Source: Oculina patagonica (lineage: Eukaryota). Taken from it: a DNA stretch of 64,000 nt. Positions 26,102 through 37,778 of the stretch are shown one piece after another. Where the stretch lies: the NCBI RefSeq assembly GCF_052425735.1, contig NC_135769.1, forward strand, positions 2,604,001 to 2,668,000, written 5' to 3'. The translations under genes were made by a program, and so were the position numbers. Below the pieces are notes generated by a model that was not told where the DNA came from, searched no databases, and worked only from the letters and a program-made list of their open reading frames with translations. Position 1 is the stretch's first letter, and each line of letters begins with the position of its first letter.

Positions 26102-26589
26102 CTAGTCTCCTTTGCCCCAGATTCTATTCTTTTGTTTTCGATTTCTCTCCTCTTGGCATGCGGTCATTAGCTTTTCGATGTGAGCCCGTATATCGTCTGG
26201 TTCGTATGGTGCGGTGTATCGAGCTTTCGGTTGCCCCGTGTGATCTATCAGCACCTTCTCGAAATTCCAGTTGATGTCGTTGTTTCGAACGGGTGACCAT
26301 CTGATATTGCTCAAGTCATCTATGAATCCGTATGGAGTCGGACATCGGGACTGAAACGAAGCAATAAAAATAAAAAATAAAAAGACAGACAAACACACTG
26401 TTAGGTAGGTAGGCATTTAGAACTTATATTTACCGTTGAAGGTTAGATAGGAAAACAGGCAGGCAAGTAGGTGGGTGGGTGGGTAGTTAGGTAGGTAGGT
26501 AGGGGGGGATAGGTAGGTAGGTAGGTAGGTAGGGAGGGAGGGAGGGAGGGAGGGAGGGAGGGTGTGAGGTAGGCAGGTAAGCAGGTAAG

Positions 26590-26620
<31 letters not shown>

Positions 26621-28152
26621 CTAGGTGTGTAGGTTTAATTCACCGTTTTGCATCTTTTGCACCAGCTTCTGGCCTTTCGGCTTTCGCGGCCAGCGGGCGA
26701 CGCCAAATTTCGCGTCTCATCCTAAATGGTGCGTTCTTCGGGGAAACTTCATTGAACATATTCTTTCCTATAACGAAGTCTCTTTATATTAGCCGAAATT
26801 TCAGTTTTCTTCCTCAATTAAAAGCGCTCGGGAGCTGTGATTTAGAACGTTCACATATGACTGCATTTAAACCAGTTTTGCCGGATTTTCTCAGTTTTCC
26901 ATGTCACCTCTGACAACTTTAAAGTCAGTCTGAATAAATACAAGCGTGGTTTCGAGAACAGGTGTACAAAATAGAGACGAACAGTTCTTGCGACATTATA
27001 TACTGTGTTATTTACTCAAGATTGCAAGAGAAAAGCTTAAATTTCTAGGCCGAGAAAACTTACGTCAGTGTCACGCCCTGCCGTTTCTTTACAACTTACC
27101 TTTATGCATGACTTCTAGCTACTCACGCATGAGAAGCAGCATGTCTTTTTATAATTCAATGCGAGCTGCCTCACAGACGTTTTTATAAAAGGAGTATAAA
27201 ACGGTACTTGCCTCCACACAATCTACAAAATAAATTTCTCAGCCAATTTTCACATACTTTGGCCTTTCGCAGCCTCAGCGGTCTTATAAAAAACCTGAAA
27301 ACACTTTGCTTTGCGCGCTGTTTTTAATCAATATTATTTAAATTTATTTCATAAGTCAACTTAACTTTCTTGTAACCCAGGATCAAAGTCTGTGAAGGCA
27401 ATACCATTTGCTTTCTTGTGGGGTTTTGTATTTAATGTCTGGCTAAGTCAGACACTTCGACTGAGCCTTATTAAAATAAACGCGATTGAAATATTTGTAA
27501 GTAGGGAGCGCCAAGTAGAGGTAAGTGAAAACAATCAATCCCTCTTTGTAACAGCTACATTTAAATTAGGTAGGATATGTAAAGTAGTTGGTCGCAATCA
27601 TGCAGATCTCAGATTTCGAGATAAAATAAAAAAAAATATATAGGCAAATAAAAAATAACGACAAAAGACTGAACTTACCTTGAAAAACGAGTAAATTTCG
27701 TCCTCGTTTTTGCCATTCACATCTATCTTCTCGAACAACGGAAAGGTCGGCTCAAAACCGTGACCTGGGCGAACATACTTCAACCCGTTCACGATCTCGT
27801 ATTTGTTTTTCCCTGGTTCTTGGTATCCGAACTGGTTACATGGAAACCCGACAATTCGTAGGCCGCAGGCGTCTGTGTTTCCATCTTTTGATGTTAGTAA
27901 ATCTTCTTGTAATGCATTCAATTTTAAGTACTGATACGTGAACTCTCAAAAGGTGGCCACATTCACCGCCAACACAACATGGCCGGTAAACTCGCTCATG
28001 GATACAATGTTCCCGTCTAAATCTTTCGCGCTGAAGTCGTAAAACGACTCAGCGCCACTTCCGTGGCATAAAGAACGTGATGCCCGTCTTTCAGAACTGT
28101 CTAACGCGCCTATAAACAGGCAGAAGACAGCGAAGAACGACCAAACGTCCAT
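26102..28152 (-). CDS. GPX: Secreted selenocysteine glutathione peroxidase (GPx3-like); exons 28152-27679 and 26350-26102; 240 aa with Sec encoded by TGA at 27948-27946
   Basis: Signal peptide. The two listed ORFs are one frame through TGA: [23 protein letters not shown]. Also [34 protein letters not shown] and [12 protein letters not shown]. The intron is phase 0, GT..AG. Confidence 0.93.
26450..26625. repeat. Compound tetranucleotide microsatellite (AGGT/AGGG/AGGC)n in the GPx intron
   Basis: Directly visible. Confidence 0.9.
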
Positions 28153-28977: not shown

Positions 28978-29843
28978 AAATAAAGTAAAACACATTAAAA
29001 TGGACAGAACCAGAGAGGGGTTTTACATTGGTTTCGTTGTAAATTTATTCAAAACATCACAAACGGCACATACATACGGCCCTGATTATTCCCAGTAATA
29101 TTCAGCCCGACACCTTTGATTGAATATGAAATAAATGAAATTTGCTATTGTCATTGCCTATTTAAAACACCCTATTTAATTTTTTTGAGTGGGGGTTTTT
29201 CATCTAAAATTACTTGACGTTTTTTTCTCTCTTCTTACAACTCATGCAGTTCTACCACATCTATCTTTATAGATTTGTGACTCTGATAGATTTATTCACT
29301 TGGATATAAAGGTTTTTTTTAATTATATTCAGATCACAATGGCCACTGAAAAACCATTTTATGGATGTAACTAAAAAAATTATTATAATTATTACTATCT
29401 CACATTTATTTCACACTGTCAGAAAAAAACATCTCTAGCTGCAGTAGAATTACGGTGTTAGTTAGTTAGTTTGTTCAGTTCCATTTAATCCTTATTTTAT
29501 ACTTAATGCTCTAACTGGGGAAAATAGCTAACAACATTCAATATAGCTCGCAACTTGCTTGGCGCGCGCGAGGAAACGCGTAGATCTCCTACGTGCGACC
29601 CCGAAGCTCGTATGCTAGCTCTAGTTCAGTGTTAACTGGATAAAAGGAAAACTGGCGAGCATCTAAGGGGGTGGGGGGTGGGGGGTAGAAAATTTTTTCT
29701 CTGCAATTTTTTTTAGTTTATGCAACTCTGCAAACTTTTTTTTGAATTCTACCTATGTTTTGTTCTAAATATCGTGTTTTCAATTTTTTTCAATGTTTTT
29801 CATATCCCCCTCCAAAAAATAATGGACTAGTTCCCCTAACACA

Positions 29844-30698
29844 TCAATTGACCGTGCTCATACTAAGTAATTTAGCTGCTTGCTCTCTGATGTCGTCATC
29901 AAGCGCAACGAACATCTCATTTCCCAGGCGAACTTTCGGGATGCGATCTCTCTTTTCAGCGCTCCTCTTTTTCACGCCAAGCTTCTGATAAAAGGGGACA
30001 AGCTCATTTCGGCAGCCTCCAATAACTTCCTTTACCCCGAGACCGGAAGCCACTTGGACCGCGTACGCACACATACCTTTCCCCAGGCCACGGCCGCGGA
30101 ACTCGGGCTTCACAACGAGGGCGGAGAGCGTGATGTTATGAATTGTGTTTGGGGAGGGCGTTTGCGATAGCTCCAGTTCTTCGGAATCTTTTTTGTTTAA
30201 CAGTGACGGGTCTAAACCAGCTACTTCCATGTACTGTTGAACTGCAGGAAAAGAAAGTCCCATCTTAAGCATCTTTCGAAATTTATTTAAATCTGGTGAC
30301 CTTGAAAAGGACATTTCCTTTAACACGCAGTGCGCAACAACTTGCTTTTCTCCGTTGCTTGAAGCCAAAGCGAGCAAATGGCACGGCAGGGTATCACGAG
30401 ACTCCTTAAGACTTGACGTGCGCACAAAGTTGGCTTCCTCGATGCCCTCGGCGGTCAGGGGGACAGGCCATTCTGACGTCACAAGGGCGGATACCTCCTC
30501 CGTATACTGGGGCACCTCGTGAAGTTTGTAAAACTCCACATGGGAAATACCAGGAACAAAATGGCGTTTATACCATAGCCATGAGAGCGCTATGATCAAA
30601 ACGCCCAAGCCAAGAGGAACACTGTGCAGTACAAGAAGAAATGCACCAACCAGCAACACGGCAGACCCCAAGAAAGCGGTATATTTACTATTTAACAT
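29844..30698 (-). CDS. GNAT acetyltransferase, NAA80-like, with an N-terminal hydrophobic anchor and an inserted CCDC53-like motif; single coding exon; 284 aa
   Basis: Acetyl-CoA motif A LVVKPEFRGRGLGK and motif B LVPFYQKLG. NAA80-like segment LHEVPQY..EVSALV.SEWP...R.SSL..S.D.LPCHLLA...VVAH..L. Residues 7-43 are hydrophobic. A 5'UTR splice acceptor lies near 30797. Confidence 0.8.
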   Translation of the reverse strand: MLNSKYTAFLGSAVLLVGAFLLVLHSVPLGLGVLIIALSWLWYKRHFVPGISHVEFYKLHEVPQYTEEVSALVTSEWPVPLTAEGIEEANFVRTSSLKESRDTLPCHLLALASSNGEKQVVAHCVLKEMSFSRSPDLNKFRKMLKMGLSFPAVQQYMEVAGLDPSLLNKKDSEELELSQTPSPNTIHNITLSALVVKPEFRGRGLGKGMCAYAVQVASGLGVKEVIGGCRNELVPFYQKLGVKKRSAEKRDRIPKVRLGNEMFVALDDDIREQAAKLLSMSTVN

Positions 30699-31031
30699 TG
30701 AAACAAATATTGATGAAGAACAAGGAGGAAAAATCCTACCAGGCGTACCGGCAACTTTGATGTTGACAAGCTAGTTTTGCTTTGTTGGCTTTAACCTGGA
30801 AAGAAAAAGAAAATTCAATAGTAGACTTAGAATTTTCTAAACATTAAGGAAGTCGTCTTCACTTTCTAGCTCGTGAGTTATTTATGAGGTATGAGTCAAC
30901 AAAGCATAGTTGAGTTGATTTTGGCTCTTTGAAATAAATTGAAAGCGAGTTGAAATCCTTCACCAACGGACATCACCCGTAGGGCAGACACCTCTCGTAA
31001 GTGGACAAGTAATCATGGTCCCAGCCACAGA

Positions 31032-31529
31032 TAGGCTTTTGTACATTATGCTAGCATTTTTTCGAGCATTTTAGTGGGGCAAAAGCATTGAGCATTATTC
31101 GAGCATTTTAGTGGCATTTTCCCAGAAAATTTTTTTTTCCAGAGAAAATAAAAAAGAAATTAATTTTTTAAGAGAAAATGAAGACTAAAACTAAAAATTC
31201 AACTACAAATAGCTTTCTAGAGATAGTCAACTACTTTCTGTACTTAGTCTCGTAGATGATTTCGAGGATTATGATTTTTTTGGCTGTATTTATGAACTTG
31301 TATACGTTGTTGTTGTTACTTGCAACACTTGTACGTTTTTGTAAGTGTTAACAGTTAACACCATGTCAAAAACTTTGAAATTAATTTAAAAAAAACCGTT
31401 TGTATAATGAGCATTAACCGAGCATTTTAGTGACTTTTTTGGGGGAGACCGAGCATTTTAGTGGGAAAAATAGAGCATTAAAGTGGAGCATTTAAGTGGG
31501 GAAACAAAAGCATAATGTACAAAAGCCTA
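31032..31529. mobile_element. hAT-type MITE
   Basis: TIR taggcttttgtacattatgct / agcataatgtacaaaagccta, 8-bp TSD gccacaga, subterminal gagcatttta repeats. Confidence 0.88.
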
Positions 31530-34499
31530 GCCACAGACAAACAATATATATTTAACCTTCCATAAGTGGGCATCGTTTTCCGTTTTTCACACATTTGTCT
31601 GTAACAGCAAATCAAAAGTCCGCGGAAAAATCTGCTGAAAACAAATTGGAAAAAACCCAACAACTCAGACATGTGTACGCGTTGCGGACCTACCTAATTA
31701 ATTCGCTGCGATCGTGCGTGCGATGGTTCTGCGCGAAACAGAGCCTCGTTCCCAGCTGGGTCTTTTCTTAAGAACGAGGTTTAGATTGCATGCAGTCTGC
31801 ATGAGGTCTTCAATTTACTTCAAGTCAAGAGCATTGCTCTTTTGAAGTAGACATGACACATGTTTTTTTTCAGCCGTTCCTGGAATAACCGAGACATAAC
31901 TTTAACAACACGCACATTAAAAACATTAAGTTGACCAGAATTTTCCAATGCAAGGCGTCTAAAAACAAGTTAATCGTCTTCAGACAGTTATGAAAAAGCA
32001 TTTAAGCGGGTCAAGGGCGACTGATTTAGCTTGCAGAGCTTTGTGTGTGGTTTGACTGGTATCAATGTGTGCTGGCTGTCAACGAAAGTTTTTTTTAGAA
32101 ATTCGAAGGGCACGTGTAACACGACATCTTTTTAGAGCCCGCCTGTTGCGCGGTTCTCGACATCATCTTTTTCAATTATCTTGTTTGGGCTCGTCTCGAA
32201 AGACGAGAAGAGTCTCTGAAAAAAAAAACTTTGAAGCAAGGACGGCGCGGCTCAACTTAGATTACTGTAACAGCAAATACTCTTACAAGCTTGAACTACT
32301 GAGTACAATTTAACTTTTTTCATAAAAAGGAAAAAACACACATGAATATTGGCATTATTGCATGTTTTGTTCACGAAGCCACAAGCAGAGGTCAAGATTT
32401 AATATTTCCCAAGGCTGAAATAATTTCCTTTTAACTTGACACCTTTCAATATTGGATATCACCGAATCTGCCTTGACAACACGAAAGTAGTCTGCCTAGC
32501 AGGCGCCGTCTCGCGCCTTTTGCATTTCTCAAATGCGCGCCTAAAAAATATACAGACGCTTGCTACTCAGGCTAACACGAAAGACAAAACAAAACAAAGC
32601 ATAAGATACTTGATTTTAGAATTAAAGAAAAAAGAGAGCGTTTGAACCATTTTTTTCCGTTTCACTTCCGCCAAAGTGTTCAGTTATTTCCTGCCTTGCA
32701 AAACTCAACAAAATGGCCAAACTTAGTAACAAAATGATCAGAAATAAAGCATATTTCACTTCACAAACCTCAATAAGATAAAATAACGTATTCTCCCGGC
32801 TTTCGCGCCAAAATCAAGCATCCTAAGTCATTAATTTTTGGCTCGTAAATCTTAAGATATTACTTTCAAAATTTTGCGAAAATATTGGACTTTGTTTGTG
32901 ACATTTTAGAAACAAGCTTAAACACGTTAAACTTTGCGTGCGTCTGACGTCCGGCTAAATGTTAAAATAACTGGATAGTCTTACAGAATCAGTCCGAAGG
33001 AAATGAAGTTCTATATTTTAGTGTTGTCGGTACTTTCAGATGTACATAGATGTTTAGTTTAAAAAATAACAAAAAATCGTAAAATAACGAAATCTTCACG
33101 ATGTCCATAATGCCCAATACAGTCTCGGCAACCGTTCACGACGCCGGGCGGAAAAAGGTTGGAAGTCAGTTTGAAAAAGTCTCGTGAGAGAGCATACGTA
33201 ATATATGACTTTGAAAAACCGATAGGAAGTTTATTGCACAACTCCACAGAAAGTTTTCGCAATGAAAAACTGAAGTACGATCATAATTCGAATTAAAAAC
33301 AAATCAACATAACTGAGACCAAATGAGGAAAATACCTTCAATTGACTCGTAAACAATTCCCTCATTTCCTGGATTAAAAGAAAAGTCGAGCTTGCCGTGT
33401 AATACAAGTTTTTCTTGTTTACTGAATAAACCAGTAGAGCTCATTAATTCGTGAAATGGTATATTACAACTGAAAAAATAACAATATTTTATACGACGTC
33501 AGTTATACTCTATGTTAAAGCCTTGTGAACTCAAACTAATGAAAGAAAGCAATATCTAGTAAAATATCCGAAGGGAATCTCGCGTCAAATTGGCTCACTT
33601 CCTACAAGTTCATTGCTGCATATTTCATGATTAGATTGTAATCCATTTCTATTCAAGCAACCCTCACTTCCTTATGGCTTCCTGTCATTGAAAAGCATTT
33701 ACAAGAGAGAGCTAAATAGCTACAGCGAGAATAGGGAAGAGAGTGCGAATACAGCCGCCTCTCATTCGCTCCCGCTAGCGAATGAGAGGCGGCTGTATTC
33801 GCAGGCGAAGAGAGTGCTGTTTTTTATGATACCACTTTTGAACCCAAAAAGAAAATTACACTCGGAAAACGTTTTTTTTTTGTCGTTCTCCTTGGTTTCA
33901 GCCACTGTTATTAAGTCACCCCTTACCCCCCTACCCCTACCCACTTGCGTACATAGCTCGGGGCTGGGGTGGGGTGAGGGTTTGGTGAATTATTTTTTCA
34001 AAATTTTCTTCCTTCTTTCCAGACCATTCCTGACCCAGTTGAATATTTTAAATACAACACATGTATTCAAAGGTGTGCTACTCATATTGTTATTGACCTT
34101 ATTAACCCAACTCAGGAAGAATATAAAGCCCAAATGGAACTCGGCAAGGAAATGGCGAGAAAAGACGAGCTGCAGGTAGAAAATAGGAAAATAAAATACT
34201 GCCCCTTAAATGTCTCTATGTACTGTTCCAATGCTTACGTAATACCAGTATTCCCCCTGGTGGGCCAAAGTTATATAATCTGGCCCTTCGCCAAAAACAG
34301 CACGGCAAAGGAAATCTTCCGAATCAGAGTAGGTCAATGCACAAGTTAATGCGGCTTTTACTTTTGCCTCTTTTTGGAATATCTCTGATGAAATAATCAT
34401 ATGAAGGACCTCCATTCATTTCCGGTACCGGGGCAATTGAACCCAGTCAAAACAAAGAAAAAATATCTGATGATTGAACTTTCAAGTGCCTAACATAAA

Positions 34500-35253
34500 A
34501 AAAAATAAATAAAAAGTATTTTTTTTAGCGCCAAAACCCACTAATTGCTCATGGCGCTTTACAATAAAAAATATTAATAAAATGATGTTAAAAAGTTAAA
34601 AACTCTAAAAATTTTAAAAACGGATATTTACAAATATAAGTTCAAATGTACCTAATAAATAATAATAATTAAAAAGCCTGTTTAAAAAGGTACGTTTTTA
34701 AATGTCTCTTAAAAATGTCAATAGAAGGACTTAATCTAAGTTCAAGTGGGATTGTGTTCCACAGCCTTGGGGCTGCCACGGCAAACGCTCTCTCTCCATA
34801 TGTTTTTAATTTTGCTTTGGGGGTCGCCAGAAGGTGCTGTGTAGATGATCTTAAAAATCTCCGAGAGGTGTGATAGTAAAGTAACTCTTGCATGTAGCAA
34901 GGCGCTGCCCCATGGAGAGCTTTGTAGACTAGTAAGAGAATTTTGTAAATTATACGATAGCGGACAGGTAGCCAGTGTAGCTTCTTAAGCACAGCGGAAA
35001 TATGATCGAATTTCCTAGTATGTGTAATAATTCGAGCTGCCGTATTTTGAACGGATTGTAATCTTGAAAGTAGATGCTGTGGAAGACCATATAGCAGTGA
35101 GTTGCAGTTATCCAGCTTCGAAGTAATAAAGGCAGGAACAACAGTTTTGGCACTCTCTTCATCAATGTACTTTCTAATTTTGGCTAGATTCCTTATATGG
35201 TAATGAGAAGACTTGCAGATTGATTTGATGTGTTCCTCAAGGATAACAAACAC
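34500..35253 (-). mobile_element. 5'-truncated LINE (CR1/L2 group); 3' end of ORF2 plus 3' UTR
   Basis: ORF 35253-34669 has FITSKLDNCNSLLYGLP, LQSVQNTAARII, LHWLPVRYRI.YKILLL, GERAFAVAAPRLWN.IP and FKRHLKTYLF. Confidence 0.9.
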
Positions 35254-36368: not shown

Positions 36369-37778
36369 ATGACCGAAGTCCAAGATCTCAATTTGACGTT
36401 TTCTGGATGTGGGTTTTTGGGAATCTATCATCTCGGAGTTGTGTCGTGTCTGAAAGAAAATGCTCCCGCGCTTTTGAAGAGAGTCAAATGTTATGGAGGG
36501 GCAAGTGCCGGTTCTTTTGCAGCGATTGCCTTACTTCTGGACTTAAATATAAGTGATAGTGCTGAATTTGTTATCAGGCTCGCCAAACGAGCGAATTCTT
36601 TGACGCTGGGACCGCTTCATCCAAGTTTTAATGTCGTCAGAACACTTCGAAGATCATTTGAAAGGATCCTGCCAGATAACGCTCATGAACTCGCGAGCGG
36701 AAGACTTCATCTCTCGTTAACAAGAGTTTCTGATCTGAAAAATGTTATCGTGTCTGAATTTCACTCCAAAGAGGATCTTGTCGAGGTGAGTTGTTGTTTC
36801 CTGAAGTTTCATATTTCAAATGATAACGATCTGCTCGCCATCGCGAAATGAAATGATGACGACGCGACGATGCTTTACATTTGTAGTAATAGACAAAAAA
36901 TGTACTCCGGGCGGACGCTGTCTTTCGATGTAGTGTAAATGAAAAGTATTCTAGACGTTATTTCAATAGCTTATAAATAAAAGCAATGTAATCATTTAAG
37001 CATCTTTTTCTTCAAGGCTTAAGAGAAGTAAACACACGACCGGTCGCGTGATATTAATTAAGGTTGTAATGTACATTTATTGCGCAACGGCTTTGAAGAG
37101 AAATGGTTCTCCCTCGAGGCTTCAAACACGTGTTTGAAGCCTCGAAATTTGATATCGACGAGTCGGAAATATTTATTTCGACTTTTCTGAAGTAAAGCTG
37201 TAGAGTTTCTTTCACTCTGTGGATGTTTTTGTTTCAAATTACAGTATGCCACAACAGAAAAAGAGCGTTTGTAAACTATAGTGCATAATTTTGTTGTCAG
37301 TTTGGTTAAGCGTAAATTTGCATGTTAAATAATATATGTACTGAGAGCGTCGCGTTTTTAGAGGAATTGTTTTGACTATTGGGGCAAGTTTCCTGCTGCT
37401 AAAACGAAGATTCGAAATATTTTACTTCACTTTCCACATTTTTATGCCATCTGGTGGTCAAATCCAATCACTTGTGGAAAAGCTAAAAATCAAGGACAGT
37501 ACTAGAAAATAACAAAGGCAGTTGATTTTGCAGTAAGTCAAAGTCAGTTTCAACTTGTTTGATTTTTTTTTGCATTGTTTGAATCCAGAACAGTCAACAT
37601 GCTTCCAATGAAAAACAATACAAATTTTCATGTGGAGCCAAAAGGACCCGCTAAGTTACATCAGACAAGTGAGCCACACAGCATGAAATCCTGTGATGCA
37701 TAATAGTAATTGGACTGAGTGGAGTACAATTCAAGGAGTAATCGGGCGACGATTTGAAATTACGAGCACGATTACTCT

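Follow-up and report, generated by a model that had tools for sequence, protein, structure and literature searches.

A predicted membrane-anchored paralogue of NAA80 with a CCDC53-type module inserted in its GNAT domain in the coral Oculina patagonica

A 64,000-nucleotide stretch of the genome of the coral Oculina patagonica (contig NC_135769.1, positions 2,604,001 to 2,668,000; here called the window) carries on its reverse strand, at 29844-30698, a single-exon gene for a putative acetyltransferase of 284 amino acids (aa). The predicted protein combines a hydrophobic N-terminal hairpin, a GNAT domain whose closest relative is the actin N-terminal acetyltransferase NAA80, and a short helical module, inserted between strands beta3 and beta4 of that domain, of the type found at the C-terminus of the WASH-complex subunit CCDC53 (WASHC3). 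Judged from sequence comparison, the GNAT domain belongs to the NAA80 branch of the N-terminal acetyltransferases (NATs) as a distinct paralogous clade, and the gene is an NAA80 paralogue, neither an NAA80 orthologue nor a member of the CCDC53 family. The features of the gene, in window positions, are these.

29844..30698, reverse strand: complete single-exon coding sequence (CDS), 284 aa and stop, from the list of open reading frames (ORFs); the protein collection contains an identical entry and 26 full-length homologues.
30567..30680, reverse strand: hydrophobic hairpin (aa 7-44) of two short helices with HSVP between them (hydropathy, AlphaFold2 (AF2) model).
30315..30545, reverse strand: N-terminal GNAT half (beta1, alpha1, alpha2, beta2, beta3; aa 52-128), NAA80-specific (phmmer to the Drosophila NAA80 (DmNAA80) structure 5wjd, hhalign, secondary structure).
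30423..30449, reverse strand: nine residues, EGIEEANFV (aa 84-92), extra to NAA80 in the alpha1-alpha2 substrate loop (a 9-residue NAA80 gap in three of three alignments).
30138..30314, reverse strand: insertion between beta3 and beta4, aa 129-187, ~59 aa (Pfam, hhalign gap, AF2).
30198..30296, reverse strand: core CCDC53-type helical module PDLNKFRKMLKMGLSFPAVQQYMEVAGLDPSLL, aa 135-167, followed by a low-confidence linker.
29901..30137, reverse strand: C-terminal GNAT half, beta4 to beta7, aa 188-266 (Pfam Acetyltransf_1, _7 and _10 above their cut-offs).
30078..30113, reverse strand: VKPEFRGRGLGK, with the acetyl-CoA motif A RGRGLGK, aa 201-207.
29850..29897, reverse strand: C-terminal amphipathic helix, aa 268-283 (a helix in AF2, moderately conserved).

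The fold model matches hundreds of GNAT structures, and Pfam located the GNAT core at aa 188-249. Motif A reads R201-G-R-G-L-G206, in agreement with the GNAT pattern Q/R-x-x-G-x-G/A, and follows strand beta4. Its residues G202, L205 and G206 are invariant in the family alignment, and motif A together with 31 other columns is invariant across 27 sequences. Since the motif is intact, the protein should bind acetyl-CoA. A feature search of the ESM Atlas returned only generic bacterial GNAT clusters and was uninformative.

Both the specific profile match and the fold similarity to NAA80 (NatH; human Q93015; Drosophila CG8481, PDB 5wjd/5wje and 6nas) extend over the two halves of the domain. Among PDB structures the N-terminal half matches only Drosophila NAA80, and the best PDB match of the family profile is DmNAA80 at 1.1e-8, both halves being aligned as two stretches. 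Comparison of the family with an NAA80 profile by hhalign gave a probability of 99.2% (E 2e-19, 33% identity), the insert forming one clean gap. The NAA80 profile was built from P0174 and four relatives; P0174 is a 171-aa protein from the exhaustive search and a true NAA80 orthologue (1e-28 to human NAA80, 4e-27 to the fly enzyme), and as a single query its best match in the genome was the acetyltransferase gene at 29844-30698. Foldseek placed NAA80 at the top (PDB 5wje, 2.1e-10; Swiss-Prot Q59DX8, 5.1e-10, followed by human and mouse NAA80), with AANAT, NAA50 and NAA60 ranked below it. The anchored protein and NAA80 have in common the signature LH..P...LL..EWP...R..SL..S.D.LPC, the VxAH strand and motif A.

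The solved enzyme allows the substrate-binding residues to be compared. In DmNAA80, W36 and R43 hold actin Asp2 and mutation of either abolishes activity, whereas K73 and S88 contact Asp3 and E87 is dispensable (PMC5924903). W36 aligns with W77, which is invariant in the family, and R43 with R93, which is conserved in at least 90% of members; the two are 16 residues apart instead of the 7 found in NAA80. G85, E88 and N90 of the nine-residue loop insertion are invariant or nearly so across the family.

In the AF2 model the insert follows strand 117-128, the one with VVAH, and precedes strand 188-196, through which the chain enters motif A; it consists of helices at 138-145, 150-159 and 171-174 plus a disordered linker. 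Of the 147 positions of the CCDC53 family profile PF10152, 105-147 align with aa 123-168; the score is 28.9 bits (E 1.8e-6), where the curated cut-off stands at 24.6, and in a genome scan the module scored 30.2 bits. The part in common with CCDC53 is a C-terminal helical unit of ~35-40 aa with the consensus Y.K[FY]FKMLKMG.P..AV..KM...G.DP..L; the anchored protein lacks the N-terminal coiled coil (profile positions about 1-100) by which CCDC53 joins the WASH complex. The coral genome has only two copies of the module, one in the true CCDC53 gene (contig C2) and one in the acetyltransferase gene, and they are about 37% identical. In CCDC53 it is terminal and split by an intron; in the anchored protein it lies uninterrupted inside an enzyme fold. 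The window copy reads GLSFP where most corals have GLPLP or GLPLA, so that S149 replaces the nearly invariant Pro of the module. F150L is read at window position 30251 (aa 150) in four of four sequencing runs, of which X1 is probably from the same species. When the module was folded in isolation by AF2 from 96 aligned units, three short helices resulted, with a predicted local distance difference test score (pLDDT) of 81-86 in the core. Foldseek found nothing for this fold in the PDB below E 1.8, and VIA-align gave Z values up to 3.8, which is noise for small helical units. A UBA/CUE-like identity, considered for the MG.P turn and terminal LL, was rejected: UBA appeared only at E >3.6, and Pfam gave no UBA/CUE match even at E 10.

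The same unit, about 40 aa long, recurs widely. An exhaustive HMMER search returned 614 occurrences in 132 proteins, up to 11 per protein, and the insert by itself accounts for most of the matches of that search. Among 70 module proteins scanned, FH2 was present in 34, FH3 in 3 and WH2 in 2. Oomycete and other protist formins (P0037-P0179, e.g. P0039, P0040, P0041, P0042 and P0046) carry tandem arrays of 6-11 units joined by Ala/Pro/Thr-rich linkers and placed directly before FH2, in contrast to the one copy inside the GNAT domain. Those named by source are all oomycete (Lagenidium, Pythium, Phytophthora, Nothophytophthora), and the insert matches such formins (e.g. Lagenidium giganteum DBA02399.1 and Pythium insidiosum GLD93157.1) to E 1e-30. 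In five formins examined the array stops 19-48 aa ahead of FH2, and no proline run of four or more, hence no polyproline FH1, lies between the two in any of the five. By its position, then, the array occupies the place of FH1. As the array stands directly before FH2 with no polyproline between, the arrangement suggests that the CCDC53-type unit functionally replaces FH1 in oomycete and protist formins that lack the polyproline form. A literature search found no paper linking CCDC53 to formin repeats or to a GNAT, and no function assigned to the C-terminal module of CCDC53/WASHC3; a 2008 formin survey does not mention the repeats, and a preprint on WASH/WAVE assembly has nothing on the CCDC53 C-terminus.

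The N-terminal hairpin was recognized from hydropathy and the AF2 model. The mean Kyte-Doolittle value exceeds 1.4 in all 15-aa windows from aa 6 to 44, the only break being H25-S-V-P28, and the AF2 model (27 homologues given; mean pLDDT 78.7) has helices at 4-25 and 27-47. Two hydrophobic helices of about 17-19 aa each are thus predicted, with K5 ahead of them and K44-R45-H46 behind. From these flanking charges we infer that both ends of the hairpin, and therefore the catalytic domain, lie on the cytosolic face of the membrane. Nematostella, Owenia and protist-type members also have a hydrophobic N-terminus.

The first-pass annotation of this DNA, made from the letters alone, had described a two-helix hydrophobic N-terminus, a GNAT domain with the NAA80 pattern in its N-terminal half, and an insert between the VVAH strand and motif A that resembled CCDC53 and protist formins. 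Hydropathy, AF2 and Pfam bear out the three parts; the PDB search, hhalign and Foldseek agree on NAA80, and the PF10152 score and the exhaustive search on the CCDC53 likeness of the insert, whose coordinates (aa 135-167, nt 30296-30198) were exact. The annotation had also held the combination of an NAA80 relative, an actin-regulator motif and a membrane anchor to be unfamiliar, and no published description of an anchored NAA80-like family with a CCDC53 module was found. The only paper found that joins NAA80 and cnidaria is a proteomics list.

The coral has a separate canonical NAA80, as the annotation had suggested looking for. It lies at G000:C13:35084836-35086925 on the reverse strand (locus L012, 2415-326) and consists of at least four collinear exons with GT-AG junctions, encoding a 157-aa GNAT that is incomplete, the C-terminal exon or exons being untraced. 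The canonical protein has neither anchor nor insert, and its W and R are spaced W-x6-R as usual. With the NAA80 profile it reaches 132.5 bits, versus 50.7 for the acetyltransferase gene of the window (61.9 with the insert removed), which is present in one copy only across the 529-Mb genome. A quick maximum likelihood tree, which took three unrelated GNAT ORFs of the coral genome as its root and, lacking the other NAT families, does not tell which lineage is older, joined the 18 insert-bearing proteins in one distinct clade (SH-like approximate likelihood ratio test (SH-aLRT) 95) and grouped the canonical coral gene with an NAA80 sequence (SH-aLRT 90). By its lower profile score and its own clade the anchored protein is thus placed outside the NAA80 orthologues. 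That the anchored gene might itself be the coral's NAA80 orthologue was considered and is ruled out by the multi-exon canonical gene from the profile search.

Full-length homologues with anchor, split GNAT and insert are found in many anthozoans (Stylophora LOC111326000, 62% identity), and the same architecture occurs in Nematostella (XP_001634129), in the annelid Owenia fusiformis, in an MMETSP protist transcriptome and in metagenomes. In distant members the insert persists but scores below the Pfam cut-off. The homologues are named 'uncharacterized', 'predicted' or 'unnamed', or bear automatic GNAT-type names such as 'Glucosamine 6-phosphate N-acetyltransferase' in UniRef for the Nematostella protein and 'RimI-like' for metagenome members. 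The Owenia and Nematostella genes are likewise single-exon. The first-pass annotation had taken the intronless CDS as a hint of retroposition or horizontal origin. As a recent event this was rejected: the single-exon CDS is common to Nematostella and Owenia, the GC content is unremarkable, the transcript appears to have an intron in its 5' untranslated region (UTR), and the members, protist-derived ones included, form one clade. On these comparisons the intronless CDS is an old trait of the family, and the architecture is ancient, because it is conserved in corals, Nematostella, Owenia and protist-derived sequences.

The mechanism proposed for the protein is as follows. The enzyme would be tethered to an endomembrane with its catalytic domain facing the cytosol, and would use acetyl-CoA to acetylate the amino group at the acidic N-terminus of a protein, actin being the likeliest. 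The inserted module would be a docking element for the substrate, beside the substrate entry path, and its ligand would probably be monomeric actin or profilin-actin. In this way actin, or a factor of actin assembly, would be acetylated at its N-terminus locally, on the membrane. That the protein is a cytosol-facing, membrane-tethered N-acetyltransferase aimed at actin or the actin machinery, with the module docking the substrate, is put forward tentatively, at a little under an even chance.

An acidic N-terminus is proposed as substrate because the W36 and R43 equivalents are conserved, and the coral's actins start MADDDVAALVVDNGSG, that is, MADDD. In NAA60 the beta3-beta4 loop lies door-like, partly over the substrate path (PMC4993997). 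Because the loop borders the substrate path in that enzyme, the module should touch the protein substrate here. Formins recruit profilin-actin through their polyproline FH1. Canonical NAA80 orthologues likewise carry a C-terminal polyproline, and two reports describe that of human NAA80 as recruiting profilin-actin (PMC7864067, PMC7141826). NAA80 is soluble, with a short beta3-beta4 turn; the anchored protein has a membrane hairpin, the CCDC53-type module at beta3-beta4, nine more residues in the alpha1-alpha2 loop and no polyproline. As the polyproline is replaced in some formins and absent in the anchored NAA80 relative, the module is proposed to recruit G-actin or profilin-actin, and this parallel is the main reason for the proposal. 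When aa 48-284 were modelled together with residues 3-376 of a near-identical actin, the predicted complex scored 0.44 against 0.00 for the best control, a result graded 'weak support'; at least 85% of contacts recur between runs, and the partner pLDDT is at least 87. The mark applied to such scores was reached by 51 of 78 solved complexes and by 2 of 108 mismatches, and at scores of 0.60 or less lie only 5 of the 78 solved complexes reaching the mark, versus all 4 passing mismatches of 180.

Several points weigh against an actin-directed enzyme. K73 and S88, the Asp3 contacts of DmNAA80, align with V125 and A193 and are not conserved, and E87, dispensable in NAA80, aligns with S192; a conserved basic residue, K/R127, lies two positions beyond V125 on the same strand. 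The conserved nine-residue insertion falls in the alpha1-alpha2 loop, which is the specificity loop of NAA80, and protist-type members are without the W and R equivalents. Since the genome keeps a canonical NAA80, actin acetylation does not depend on the anchored gene. The C-terminal module of CCDC53 is without a known ligand, and its fold search gave no significant structural match. The complex score falls in the weak band and, as a solved NAA80-actin complex exists (6nas), may show likeness only. The membrane topology and location are predicted, and the RNA nature of the runs behind the transcription evidence is a guess. The localised acetylation of actin or its regulators that the first-pass annotation had proposed accordingly remains a proposal: the W36/R43 equivalents, the actin-assembly contexts of the module and the weak complex pass favor it, whereas the canonical NAA80, the three unconserved contact residues and the remodelled loop do not.

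The serious rival is a different membrane protein substrate. The enzyme would then, like the Golgi NAA60, be a membrane-tethered protein acetyltransferase for non-actin substrates, for example N-termini or lysines of proteins near the membrane, and the module would either cover the substrate path as a regulatory lid or dock a partner unrelated to monomeric actin, e.g. WASH-complex or other endosomal proteins. The canonical NAA80 gene, the separate clade of the insert family, the enlarged specificity loop, the unconserved K73 and S88 equivalents and the protist-type members without W and R all agree with it. So does the precedent of NAA60 (NatF), a membrane-associated, cytosol-facing NAT in which an unusually long beta3-beta4 loop over the substrate path restrains activity. 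NAA60 however holds to its membrane through amphipathic helices at the C-terminus, has a 20-residue hairpin for a loop where the coral protein has a helical domain, and is less closely related (Foldseek 7.7e-6 versus 5e-10 for NAA80). The Asp2-binding equivalents W77 and R93 are conserved in the animal members, the other contexts of the module are nearly all actin-assembly proteins, and the complex with actin passed weakly while controls stayed at 0.00; these argue for actin, and the non-actin substrate is considered possible but on balance doubtful.

A role on small molecules is rather improbable. The protein would be a small-molecule or lipid-linked amine N-acetyltransferase on the membrane, comparable to NAT8/NAT8L, AANAT or GNA1, its NAA80 likeness reflecting shared descent only. 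The C-terminal half does match glucosamine-6-phosphate and serotonin N-acetyltransferases at E 1e-5 to 1e-7, in line with the automatic UniRef name of the Nematostella member, and the NAT8 family aligns over anchor and GNAT domain in Foldseek at about 7e-7. Such matches, however, are confined to the generic acetyl-CoA core (aa 185-250), while the substrate-side half matches NAA80 alone; it is because only the generic half resembles GNA1 or AANAT that this role is less likely, and a protein-interaction module beside the substrate groove would be hard to explain. The NAT8/camello proteins, GNATs of the endoplasmic reticulum membrane, also have an N-terminal anchor followed by GNAT, and align structurally over aa 2-273 depending on the entry, but show no specific sequence similarity and no insert. 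NAT8-family enzymes are usually taken to work in the lumen, on small molecules and on lysines. Far less probable still is a catalytically inactive scaffold or decaying gene. The Ser at the place of NAA80 Glu87 and S149 at the module's Pro would fit one, but E87 is unnecessary in NAA80, neither motif A nor the 31 other columns vary, cnidarians and the annelid alike have an intact ORF, and the gene appears transcribed. Of the well-supported differences from close relatives 7 of 14 are synonymous, as are all five of those in GNAT strands or helices.

The ends of the transcription unit were traced from contigs of sequencing runs.

30699..30797, reverse strand: 5'UTR portion of the coding exon, at 30699-30795; an AG acceptor (30797-30796) and a polypyrimidine tract precede it (sequence, contigs).
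29457..29843, reverse strand: 3'UTR, at least this far and possibly to about 29021 (contigs of X1, record 2 covering 29457-30729 and record 1 covering 29021-29454).

Contigs of probable RNA runs, the RNA nature being a guess, cover 29021-30797. In run X2 the match of a 1014-nt contig ends at 30797, at the polypyrimidine-AG acceptor, and the contig's further 62 nt occur nowhere in 29000-34900; coverage falls at the same acceptor in runs X2 and X4. The flank 31561-33727 is empty except for one low-depth 151-nt contig at 31760-31910 (X1) and trace depth below 1 near 32349-32742 (X2, X4). Because the X2 contig leaves the genomic match exactly at the AG acceptor, the CDS seems to be one exon of a transcript that nevertheless has a 5'UTR intron, and the gene appears to be transcribed, as far as runs only guessed to be RNA tell. 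A high-copy repeat lies around 29590-29985, in the 3'UTR and just past the stop codon: the summed contig word depth is 650-1040 in 29591-29984, versus about 29 over the CDS, and many contigs break at 29707, 29743 and 29819.

Immediately downstream, on the same strand, are exons of a glutathione peroxidase gene (window 26102-27921, reverse strand; Pfam GSHPx 6e-21 for the exon at 27601-27921). A patatin-like phospholipase first exon (window 36369-36848, forward strand; Pfam Patatin 4e-13) is divergent from the acetyltransferase. Between them a 194-aa ORF (window 34669-35253, reverse strand), without a Pfam match, resembles the C-terminal tail of a retrotransposon reverse-transcriptase polyprotein, and high-depth contigs break near it, at 34556-34596. 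The chromosome-scale contig of the window also carries at least a dozen actin gene copies, clustered at G000:C12:23.10-23.56 Mb and 19.23-19.24 Mb (L018-L023); the first exons read in this cluster begin MADDDVAALVVDNGSG.

In the literature NAA80 figures as the one soluble enzyme dedicated to actin (PMC5924898, PMC5924903). The sister family, conserved in cnidarians, at least one annelid and sequences of protist derivation, has a predicted membrane anchor and an actin-regulator module at the substrate groove, which suggests that actin modification has a spatially confined second branch. In its widest form the proposal is that the CCDC53-type unit is an unrecognised recruiter of actin monomers or profilin-actin, used in the WASH complex, in FH1-less formins and in an NAA80-like enzyme, and that this enzyme is a second, membrane-restricted actin N-terminal acetyltransferase, already present in the animal ancestor and since lost from the vertebrate and insect model species; this much is judged unlikely. 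The family does give a testable handle on the C-terminal module of CCDC53/WASHC3: because the module stands at the FH1 position in formins and where NAA80 would use polyproline, it is predicted to bind G-actin or profilin-actin. The Nematostella orthologue (XP_001634129) places the family in a genetically tractable animal.

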